From the sequence record PV340851.1: a stretch of DNA of 64,000 bases; one strand, given 5' to 3'. The translations under genes and the position numbers were made by a program. Shown piece after piece: positions 49,832-54,140 of this stretch. The notes beneath the pieces were generated by a model. The model worked only from the letters and a program-made list of their open reading frames with translations. It did no database searches and was not told where the DNA came from. Every line of letters begins with the position of its first letter. The first letter of the stretch is position 1.

Positions 49832-49905
<74 letters not shown>

Positions 49906-49909
49906 CCTC

Positions 49910-49981
49910 GCTTGCTTAGCTCAGCGGTAGAGCATCTCGTTTACACCGAGGCGGTCGGCGGTTCGATCCCGTCAGCAAGCA
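49910..49981 (+). tRNA. tRNA-Val (anticodon TAC)
   Basis: Acceptor stem GCTTGCT/AGCAAGC; anticodon loop TTTACAC; T loop GTTCGAT; CCA not encoded. Confidence 0.96.
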
Positions 49982-51942: not shown

Positions 51943-53396
51943 TGAAGATAGTAATTGTTGGTGGTGGTACGATAGGGTGGTTAGCAACGCTATACCTCTC
52001 AAAGGGACACAACGTTGTCAATATATCCACAGATGAGATTCCTATCATCGGTGTGGGTGAAGGTACTACTGGAAAGTTCCTTGACATTTTTAAGGGCACC
52101 AATGTTACTGAGTTGATGATTGCATTTGATGCCTTACCAAAATTAGGTATCAAGTTCAATGGGTGGAGCAGTCATAAAGATACTTTCTTTTCTCCATTAG
52201 ATGGTACTGATACTGCACACTACTACTTAGATTATTCAACATATGCCCAAACATTTGTTGATCATGGTATAGGTACAATCAGTGACTTGTCCATTCTTGC
52301 TCATGCTGGTGCTAGTAATTACTATGCTACCGAGAATGTATTGAATCTAGACTATGCATCGCATGGTCTGCATATTGATGCATACAAAACTGCTGCAGCA
52401 TTGAAGGACCAGTGCATTGAAGATAATGTTCTACACTATGACAATAAAGTAGTCAAAGTAAATCGAAAGCAAGGAAAAGTTTCTTCACTTAAACTTGACG
52501 ATGGTAGATCTGTCCGAGCAGATTTGTACATTGATTGTTCTGGATTCTCTAGAGTCCTGAATAATGATATGGGATGGGTAGACTACACTGAATATCTACC
52601 TGTCAATCGTGCTTTGATTTATGATGGCGGTGATGGCAAACGTGCTCCATATACTATTGCTACTGCAAAGAAGTATGGATGGACATGGGAAATTCCTACC
52701 AGAAATAAAATTGGTAGAGGATATGTATACTGTGATAAGTATGCATCTGAGGATGACATTCTAGAAGAACTAGGAGACGTAGAAAAACTCAGATCAATTG
52801 AGTTTGAATCAGGACGAATCGAACAATTCATCAAGGGCAATGTTATAAGTATTGGTTTGTCCTCTGGTTTCCTAGAACCTCTGCAAGCAACTAGCATTCA
52901 CTGTGCTATAATGCAGATGGAATTGTTGCACTACTCATTCCCAGATGAGGATTTTATTGATAATGAATTATCTGCTGCACGATACAATGAATTGTGTGGT
53001 AGATTGTATGATGACATGAGAGACTTTGTTGCCTTGCATTATACAGGTGGCAAAACAGATAGTGAGTTCTGGAAATCTATGAAGACTCCAGAGCGTACTC
53101 TCAACCTCATTAGACTTGCCAACACTAGACTGCTCAGATCATTTGATTTTGAACATACATCTGGTACTGTAAAGCAGGAGTCATGGAATCCCATACTCCA
53201 AGGATTGGGACACCTTAACAAGTGTTCCATCCCTACAGTATTTGATGCAGATGGTGCTAATATGCAATGGTGGATCACCAAAAATGAGGATCGCATTGCC
53301 CAAGTTCAGTCTGAAGTCTTAGAAAAAAACTACTTGACAACAGACAAACTTAATGATATACTGAAGTCTGTCTCAAACAGTCCCGAAAAGACTTAA
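51942..53396 (+). CDS. Tryptophan halogenase-like flavoprotein
   Basis: VGGGTIGW, IGVGEGT, YIDCSGF, WTWEIP and SGFLEPLQAT. Confidence 0.9.
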   Translation: MKIVIVGGGTIGWLATLYLSKGHNVVNISTDEIPIIGVGEGTTGKFLDIFKGTNVTELMIAFDALPKLGIKFNGWSSHKDTFFSPLDGTDTAHYYLDYSTYAQTFVDHGIGTISDLSILAHAGASNYYATENVLNLDYASHGLHIDAYKTAAALKDQCIEDNVLHYDNKVVKVNRKQGKVSSLKLDDGRSVRADLYIDCSGFSRVLNNDMGWVDYTEYLPVNRALIYDGGDGKRAPYTIATAKKYGWTWEIPTRNKIGRGYVYCDKYASEDDILEELGDVEKLRSIEFESGRIEQFIKGNVISIGLSSGFLEPLQATSIHCAIMQMELLHYSFPDEDFIDNELSAARYNELCGRLYDDMRDFVALHYTGGKTDSEFWKSMKTPERTLNLIRLANTRLLRSFDFEHTSGTVKQESWNPILQGLGHLNKCSIPTVFDADGANMQWWITKNEDRIAQVQSEVLEKNYLTTDKLNDILKSVSNSPEKT

Positions 53397-53399
53397 AAC

Positions 53400-53581
53400 T
53401 TGCTCTGGTCGGGATGGTCTCTTGACCCCCTAGGTTTCTTTGTTCCTAAAACAAAGTGGTGCGGATGGGATACCTCCCGCCAGGTTTCTTATTTCCTGTC
53501 AAAGAATAAGTGGTGGATCCAATTGACCCCTTCCGTGTGGTTGGTTCTTGTTTACAACTAAAACAAACAAGTGGCGAGCAT
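53400..53581 (+). ncRNA. Structured RNA with three hairpin-pseudoknot modules, possibly the manA RNA motif
   Basis: Closing stem TGCTC/GAGCA; three modules each ending AAGTGG with covarying pairs. The family name is from memory only. Confidence 0.7.
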
Positions 53582-53708
53582 AAACACACACAACTGTCAC
53601 AAGGCTGTTTACTTTTGTGACATTTCTGTGCTATATAATGTCCACGTAGACTAGTCGAGTCTACTAAATCTGCGGGTAACCATTCCGCAAGTAACTAAAG
53701 GTATAAAA

Positions 53709-54103: not shown

Positions 54104-54140
54104 AGAGGGGCTTGACGCCCCTCTTTTTTTGCTATATAAT
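54104..54140 (+). terminator. Terminator hairpin carrying the -35 of the hli promoter
   Basis: AGAGGGGC-TTGAC-GCCCCTCT plus T tract; TTGACG(54112)-N17-TATAAT(54135). Confidence 0.75.

Follow-up and report, generated by a model that had tools for sequence, protein, structure and literature searches.

The stretch of DNA analysed here (the window) comprises 64,000 nt of sequence record PV340851.1. Over the query, its identity to Synechococcus phages Sf-CH3 and Sf-FP1 is 100%; both are T4-like cyanomyoviruses that infect WH8102. On the plus strand of the window, an array of small structured RNA units begins within the end of a tryptophan halogenase gene and is followed by a Phage_OMP / DUF680 beta-barrel gene (Table 1), after which come hli (high-light-inducible) genes; the other neighbours are annotated as hypothetical in GenBank. 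Two tRNA genes lie 3.4 kb upstream on the same strand (49832-49905 and 49910-49981, Arg and Val in GenBank), followed by a transaldolase gene, a gene for a Phd-like antitoxin and small ORFs, and then by the halogenase gene and the array. Because a near-consensus extended -10 promoter lies within the halogenase 3′ end, the array in this phage may also be transcribed alone.

The region downstream of the array holds further structured elements. In the Phage_OMP leader, we found two hairpins at 53646-53664 (GTAGAC/GTCTAC, loop TAGTCGA) and 53671-53689 (TGCGG/CCGCA, loop GTAACCATT). The loops are the same in phage Sf-CH11, in which the stems read GCCAC/GTGGC and TGCAG/CTGCA, and these compensatory changes suggest a separate conserved leader structure. 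An intrinsic terminator follows the OMP-like gene at 54104-54140 (AGAGGGGC...GCCCCTCT and a T-run). A sigma-70-like promoter (TTGACG-17-TATAAT) begins in its loop, giving a boundary that resembles PeSL, the composite terminator-promoter motifs of T4-like phages (PMC2839356, PMC4122927).

Table 1. Features of the wcaG locus in the window (positions within the 64,000-nt stretch)
Feature	Start	End	Strand	Details and evidence
Tryptophan halogenase gene, upstream	51942	53396	+	Pfam PF04820, E 8e-86; GenBank annotation
Sigma-70-like site TTGACA-17-TATACT with TG	53334	53362	+	11/12 matches; within halogenase 3′ end, 16 nt before the conserved element
Whole conserved wcaG array	53378	53581	+	Four units and terminal UGGCGAGC; homology with 23 distinct IMG/VR contigs, about 200 phage records
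Unit 0, type B	53379	53408	+	Hairpin AGUC 53379-82/GACU 53390-93, A-rich tail, UGG 53406-08; aligned in 24/24 arrays
Unit 1 linker hairpin	53416	53427	+	GGUC, loop UCUU, GACC; inner pairs covary (GC 17/UA 4; UA 15/CG 4)
RF01761 (wcaG RNA) match	53430	53524	+	E 2.5e-15; model positions 1-98 all aligned
Module 1, H-type pseudoknot	53431	53459	+	S1 UAGG 53431-34/CCUA 53445-48; linker UUU; S2 53438-44/53450-56; UGG 53457-59
Linker hairpin P2 (Rfam model)	53466	53479	+	UGGGA, loop UACC, UCCCG; Rfam alignment
Module 2, H-type pseudoknot	53481	53513	+	S1 CAGG 53481-84/CCUG 53495-98; linker UUU; S2 53488-94/53504-10; UGG 53511-13
Unit 3 linker	53514	53539	+	GGAUCC...CCCCUUCCGUGUG; CCCCUUCCGUGUGG invariant in 24 arrays
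Module 3, H-type pseudoknot	53540	53574	+	S1 GUUG 53540-43/CAAC 53555-58; linker GUU; S2 53547-53/53565-71; UGG 53572-74
Terminal UGGCGAGC	53572	53579	+	Conserved 3′ end of the arrays; Rfam model positions 84-91
AT-rich hairpin, then TTTCTGTGCT, then TATATAAT	53595	53622	+	Weak terminator-like site; conserved after tRNA-Gly in Sf-CH11
Phage_OMP / DUF680 beta-barrel gene, downstream	53709	54080	+	Pfam PF24653, E 1e-51; annotation

An unannotated wcaG RNA gene

A first-pass annotation, made from the sequence alone, had described an RNA of three tandem pseudoknots at 53400-53581 and had suggested that it might be the manA motif, naming wcaG among other families worth scanning for. An Rfam scan of all 64 kb at gathering scores returned three matches: two tRNAs and wcaG RNA, the latter at 88.6 bits (the gathering score of RF01761 is 42 bits). 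The manA family (RF01745) had no match at its gathering score in the 64 kb, nor at E<=10 between 53300 and 53720, an interval in which this permissive scan yielded only noise besides wcaG. Together, the match to the full wcaG model and the missing manA match identify the element as wcaG RNA (Weinberg et al. 2010, PMC2864571), and the manA suggestion falls away.

The published wcaG RNA comes from T4-like cyanophages and marine metagenomes, where it precedes exopolysaccharide or high-light genes; its motif was called cis-regulatory and rated 'switch: y' (PMC2864571). Its hallmarks are present here. Hairpins P1, P2 and P3 occur in order (53438-56, 53466-79 and 53488-510 in the Rfam alignment), and their stems covary in relatives. 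The UGGYG motif, remarked on in 2010 as conserved and present twice (PMC2864571), occurs in four copies, at 53406, 53457, 53511 and 53572. The setting, a Synechococcus myovirus (Sf-CH3) with Phage_OMP and then hli genes downstream, also agrees with the published description. The window thus contains a wcaG RNA gene that had gone unannotated. The 2010 work had already established the family, its occurrence in cyanophages and one pseudoknot; in the full-text literature searched, we found no experiments on wcaG and no reported ligand, the mentions besides the 2010 paper being at the level of annotation.

Repeat units and their covariation

The conserved array is longer than the element first described. 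Every string quoted in the first-pass annotation lies where it was placed, including TGCTC (53401-53405) and GAGCA (53576-53580), and its 3′ end stands; its 5′ start does not, as homology begins at 53378 and a fourth unit had been missed. This unit 0 has a hairpin of 4 bp with a 7-nt loop, and the halogenase stop codon (TAA, 53394-96) falls within it. In all, 230 phage records match this stretch of the window. The other three units contain the pseudoknot modules, which share one plan: a 5′ strand, a 3-nt U-rich linker, a hairpin of 6-7 bp and then UGG. The S2 hairpins pair CTTTGTT (53438-44) with AACAAAG (53450-56) in module 1 and CTTGTTT (53547-53) with AAACAAG (53565-71) in module 3, which lies outside the Rfam match; S2 of module 2 includes CTTATT (53488-93) with AATAAG (53505-10). 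Each hairpin loop starts with the complement of its own 5′ strand and ends A-rich, which is the topology of an H-type pseudoknot.

To assess these helices, we compared units of the same type among about 230 IMG/VR contigs fetched with two exact patterns. The scanner selected units by their hairpin stems and not by their pseudoknot pairs. Pairs were counted in per-module alignments, because a MAFFT alignment of the whole array mis-registers modules 1 and 3. In 57 distinct sequences of the module-2 type, all 4 bp of the pseudoknot are paired in 100% of cells, and the inner pairs vary (UA 39/CG 12/AU 6 and GC 42/AU 8/UA 7). The pairing columns are those of the wcaG pseudoknot labelled SS_cons_1 in the 2010 Stockholm alignment, in which the 4 nt before UUUC pair with the P3 loop. 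For the module-1 type (51 sequences), a 3-bp helix is supported, with pairs AU 24/GC 12/GU 9 and GC 19/AU 13, and the fourth S1 pair is mostly unpaired; this P1 pseudoknot is absent from the Rfam and 2010 model annotation. The module-3 type (29 distinct sequences) is 94% paired, one pair occurring as UA 16/AU 4/CG 2 with 7 U-U mismatches.

When loops were permuted among units of the same type, the observed pairing was reached in 0, 0 and 1 of 1000 shuffles for the three types. A covariance model of a single module recovers precisely these three modules (type A) in the 64 kb, with no other site above 12 bits; all three were in its seed. The tandem array of three modules is not a product of chance. 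Relatives thus bear out, with compensatory changes in all three modules, the tandem pseudoknots that had been proposed from internal covariation; the proposal rediscovered one published pseudoknot and correctly extended it to two further modules.

Other pairings fared less well. The helix proposed to close the element, TGCTC with GAGCA, is not upheld: 5′ GCUC occurs with 3′ GAGC in 3 arrays and with GUGC in 4, and GCCC occurs with either. Since these 5′ and 3′ variants combine freely in the 24 aligned arrays, the middle pair of such a helix is usually broken. Long-range pairs predicted by RNAalifold lack compensatory changes in relatives and are uninformative because they are invariant. Folding energy likewise gave no argument for structure: for 53397-53585, the minimum free energy is ordinary (z = -0.76; 47/200 shuffles fold as well). 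We also rejected a 53-aa ORF at 53400-53561 as coding, since relatives show indels of 1, 2 and 4 nt there, together with compensatory substitutions of paired bases.

Unit 0 represents a second unit type (type B). Across 99 distinct type-B units, the fourth stem pair occurs as AU 77/CG 11/UA 5. A pairing of the loop with the tail is possible in unit 0 (GA 53385-86 with UC 53404-05), and in type B generally a GA loop goes with UC in 7/7 and a GG loop with CC in 73 and AC in 19, a co-occurrence that spans only 2 bp and probably reflects one lineage. The nucleotides that remain unpaired around the helices are highly conserved, and the single-stranded UGGYG, GUUUC and GCGGAUGG are strictly so among relatives.

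Each unit ends in UGGYG, so that arrays can be described by their anchors. Counting UGGYG anchors 25-75 nt apart, we found arrays of 2 (27 arrays), 3 (48), 4 (41), 5 (4) and 6 (1) units, numbers that are descriptive only, the loci coming from a sample biased by the two sequence patterns used. At three loci (L185, L188, L208), a type-B unit replaces module 1, making types A and B interchangeable at one position.

The units do not form near-identical repeats: for the array, Tandem Repeats Finder returned 0 rows, and the units share only segments of 10-22 nt at 77-100% identity. This bears on the resemblance to type III antitoxins raised in the first-pass annotation; in a system of that kind, the repeats would be cut into unit pseudoknots that neutralise an endoribonuclease encoded downstream. 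The topology does agree, and the order of tandem pseudoknot units, terminator and gene is shared; near-identical direct repeats are what such a system would show, yet here the units have diverged, and the gene downstream is Phage_OMP in the window and, elsewhere in the sample, encodes OMP-like proteins or sugar-nucleotide enzymes or is a tRNA gene, never a ToxN/AbiQ-type protein. At other arrays, the main families encoded downstream are enzymes or structural proteins. We therefore consider an antitoxin of this kind very improbable.

The arrays belong to phages. At least 120 viral contigs contain the central pattern. Searching 185,579 species genomes with it gave 4 true arrays and no more, each on a low-GC contig of a MAG assigned to an implausible taxon; cyanobacterial genomes had none. 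The four contigs (L232, L235, L238 and L243) are binned as Acidimicrobiaceae, Neomarinimicrobiota, Chitinophagaceae and Euryarchaeota, and are most likely mis-binned cyanophage contigs. Apart from these four probable mis-binnings, all the wcaG arrays that we found lie in phage DNA.

Position of the arrays and candidate roles

The array always lies directly 3′ of a same-strand ORF or tRNA, and the stop codon often falls inside the first unit. Seven upstream genes that appeared to be on the opposite strand, and would have placed arrays at convergent or divergent junctions, proved to be artefacts of the ORF heuristic; a clustering of upstream ORFs read from stop to stop gave spurious frames and was discarded. 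The upstream genes are mutually unrelated, and the array remains constant although its neighbours on either side change. A promoter of its own was rejected as a general feature of the array: the window has a good site, but in the 200 nt that precede the arrays a sigma-70-like promoter is seldom seen, with 4 hits for 105 arrays. In two related phages, ORFs have been annotated at the array or at its expected site. The 'hypothetical protein' SRSM4_042 runs across the S-RSM4 array (L246 1537-1650), and Syn1_206 (L245 1577-1666) lies just after the Syn1 halogenase gene, where an array would be expected; both are probably spurious.

Among 120 distinct arrays, the last unit is followed on its 3′ side by an intrinsic terminator in 91 cases, by a tRNA gene in 13 and by neither in 16. 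Terminators begin a median of 21 nt after the final UGGCG (range 16-61, first locus set), and they show the composite design of PeSL elements, with a TTGaca-like box in the loop in 59/88 and a -10-like box after the terminator in 72/88. For arrays of the window type, a tRNA is next in 8/18. Phages Sf-CH11, S-RSM4 and S-PM2 share the order array, G+C-rich hairpin lacking a U-tract, and tRNA-Gly 4-7 nt further on. In the window, 53582-53630 (compared with L244 1700-1860) lacks this hairpin and tRNA-Gly, and the sequence picks up at an AT-rich hairpin, the one found behind tRNA-Gly in Sf-CH11; the window phage has lost the G+C-rich hairpin and the tRNA. A more elaborate cluster is found in S-CREM1 (L248 1536-2434), where six tRNA genes (tRNA-Met, Leu, Asn, Gly) are interspersed among wcaG, manA and abiF RNAs. 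There, only 0-1 nt separate manA from tRNA-Leu and from tRNA-Asn, a spacing that looks as though tRNA processing cuts it out.

One property is shared by nearly all contexts, namely that the array stands at the end of an RNA; that end usually lies immediately beyond a terminal hairpin. We tentatively propose, as plausible rather than probable, that the wcaG array forms a stable 3′-terminal domain of a transcript and, acting in trans, binds one partner in several copies. Alongside the observed family, fold, modularity, phage restriction and 3′-terminal or tRNA-cluster position, this adds stability, action in trans and a partner, which we infer. The element itself is a chain of small units, four in this phage, each ending in single-stranded UGGYG. 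Three of them are compact H-type pseudoknots, where a 3-nt U-rich linker connects a G+C-rich helix of 3-4 bp to a hairpin of 6-7 bp, with an A-rich strand crossing the short helix. Under this proposal, the array would form the last portion of the upstream transcript. Its 3′ end would be defined by the terminator hairpin, or by an RNase P cut at the next tRNA in relatives, and the array would then serve in trans as a stable multivalent platform. A host or phage RNA-binding protein is one candidate partner. Another would be tRNA CCA ends, as UGGYG is complementary to a CCA end plus a purine discriminator; we treat this complementarity as a lead only.

Several observations favour this trans-acting reading: the range of 2-6 units, the interchange of types A and B, the 3′ position, the rarity of an own promoter, the variability of both neighbours and, with the pattern used, the absence of a cyanobacterial copy. 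The same context, transcript 3′ end or tRNA cluster together with 2-6 units and no covarying pairing with the terminator, fits the putative multivalent decoy that had been suggested from the window. Where a tRNA gene comes next with no U-tract hairpin in between, there is no terminator for the array to control, nor an adjacent mRNA leader on which it could act.

The 3′ position would also suit a passive element, a nuclease-resistant stack of pseudoknots that shields the upstream message from 3′-to-5′ decay or directs its maturation with no specific partner. Arrays always stand at the 3′ end of an ORF or tRNA unit, before the terminal hairpin, and their compact pseudoknots may even be triple-helical, as their U-rich and A-rich linkers suggest. 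Such protection is normally afforded by a terminator hairpin alone, however; the upstream genes have nothing in common, and the strict conservation of the single-stranded motifs points to specific recognition. We regard a purely passive role as unlikely.

The downstream side argues against the trans-acting reading. In 110/118 arrays the next long ORF has the same orientation, and in no case is it clearly opposite; among 124 downstream genes 51 encode epimerases/dehydratases, 15 cytidylyltransferases and 3 mannose-6-P isomerases, with about 56% being sugar-nucleotide or envelope genes. This regulon-like pattern is what led Weinberg et al. to the cis-regulatory label (PMC2864571). The short distance from array to terminator would also suit a local effect on termination. 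The window-type arrays are followed by a mixed set (OMP-like, tail fibre-like, S-layer, oxygenases, CpeT).

A close rival is read-through in cis, in which the nascent array, alone or bound by a factor, acts on the polymerase or on the hairpin about 21 nt downstream, such that transcription of the upstream unit continues into envelope, sugar or high-light genes, as in HK022 put and EAR/epsC. The frequent nearby terminator, the co-directional downstream gene and the enrichment of polysaccharide and envelope genes downstream regardless of the upstream gene all agree with antitermination of this kind. An antiterminator that covaries with the array is absent: the terminator 5′ arm pairs with its own array at -8.58 kcal/mol and with other arrays at -8.57 kcal/mol, so that native pairs are no more complementary than permuted ones. 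This permutation test is blind to pairing between two invariant segments. The lack of a native excess is among the points that favour action in trans, and it is equally a prediction of a mechanism that acts on the polymerase. The epsC RNA, a riboswitch candidate in 2010 like wcaG, later turned out to be an antiterminator of this kind. Against read-through, most terminators carry a promoter of their own, making the downstream gene independent of array-containing transcripts. In addition, 13/120 arrays precede a tRNA gene with no U-tract hairpin between, put and EAR lack the variable copy number of the array (2-6 units), and Rfam detected no similarity to either. On balance, we consider read-through possible but somewhat unlikely.

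The published suggestion, a metabolite riboswitch whose tandem aptamers control the adjacent intrinsic terminator, accounts for some of these data. Unpaired nucleotides around the helices are highly conserved, a terminator lies downstream, there are precedents for small pseudoknotted aptamers and for tandem ones (the glycine and glutamine riboswitches, for example), and the 2010 rating itself favours a switch (PMC2864571). An expression platform would be expected to overlap or covary with the array, yet the terminator does neither, separated as it is by a spacer of 16-61 nt. Moreover, 2-6 units share a single terminator, a promoter lies inside it, some arrays precede tRNA genes, the genes downstream of window-type arrays are heterogeneous, and no ligand has been reported in the literature searched. 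A metabolite riboswitch thus seems to us quite improbable.

Beyond the published description, this work adds the repeat-unit logic, the P1 and third-module pseudoknots, a second unit type and the true bounds of the array in this phage, as well as its absence from cyanobacterial genomes with the pattern used and its 3′-terminal and tRNA-cluster context. These descriptive points weaken the reading of wcaG as a 5′-UTR riboswitch. The fuller claim, that wcaG RNAs are instead phage-only, stable 3′-end or tRNA-cluster RNAs of 2-6 interchangeable H-type pseudoknot units that display UGGYG and form a multivalent trap in trans, is possible but doubtful in its entirety. The wcaG RNA has been an orphan 'riboswitch candidate' since 2010 and is common in marine cyanomyoviruses, which reprogram the main photosynthetic bacteria of the ocean. 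A variable chain of pseudoknots, its position at 3′ ends or beside tRNAs and the lack of a cyanobacterial copy with the pattern used would direct attention to a binding partner or an effect on polymerase rather than to a metabolite. For the window, the practical outcome is an annotation of the wcaG RNA; small ORFs called across the array in related genomes are probably spurious.

Comparison with known systems

Type III antitoxins (ToxI) resemble the array in having tandem pseudoknot units followed by a terminator. They differ in that the toxin encoded next to them cuts their units, which are near-identical, whereas wcaG units are diverged and have no toxin gene beside them. The manA RNA (RF01745) is, like wcaG, an orphan RNA of marine cyanophages and lies near it in the S-CREM1 tRNA cluster, but the S-CREM1 manA sequence lacks any feature of a wcaG unit.

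Among antiterminators, EAR/epsC of Bacillales contains a pseudoknot and precedes polysaccharide genes, acting as a processive antiterminator RNA of Bacillus polysaccharide operons, and put is an RNA of phage HK022 that acts on the host polymerase. Both are, like the array, structured RNAs upstream of terminators. They are single-copy folds rather than arrays of 2-6 units, and we found no sequence or model similarity between them and wcaG.

The tRNA cluster of phage T4 contains species 1 and 2, stable structured RNAs that are not tRNAs and that are co-transcribed and processed with the phage tRNAs. We liken them to wcaG in setting only and claim no homology. The sponge RNAs CsrB and RsmZ present a variable number of short conserved single-stranded motifs on repeated small structures. 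The wcaG array likewise varies in motif number; it differs in motif and fold, and CsrB and RsmZ have promoters of their own. We know of no matching protein for such a sponge in picocyanobacteria or their phages.

The hairpin that follows most arrays is comparable to PeSL, with its -35-like box in the loop and -10-like box after the U-tract. PeSL is a cassette boundary beside the array and not the array itself.

The nearest relative remains the wcaG model of 2010, of which the element is a member by its P1-P3 hairpins, P3 pseudoknot, repeated UGGYG, T4-like cyanophage home and downstream high-light genes. That paper shows epsC beside wcaG as another riboswitch candidate (PMC2864571). The model spans 95 of about 204 conserved nt, leaving out the 5′ unit, the third pseudoknot module, the P1 pseudoknot and the repeat-unit logic. 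The 2010 text is silent on the extra units, although the flanks of the published alignment contain them (PMC2864571).
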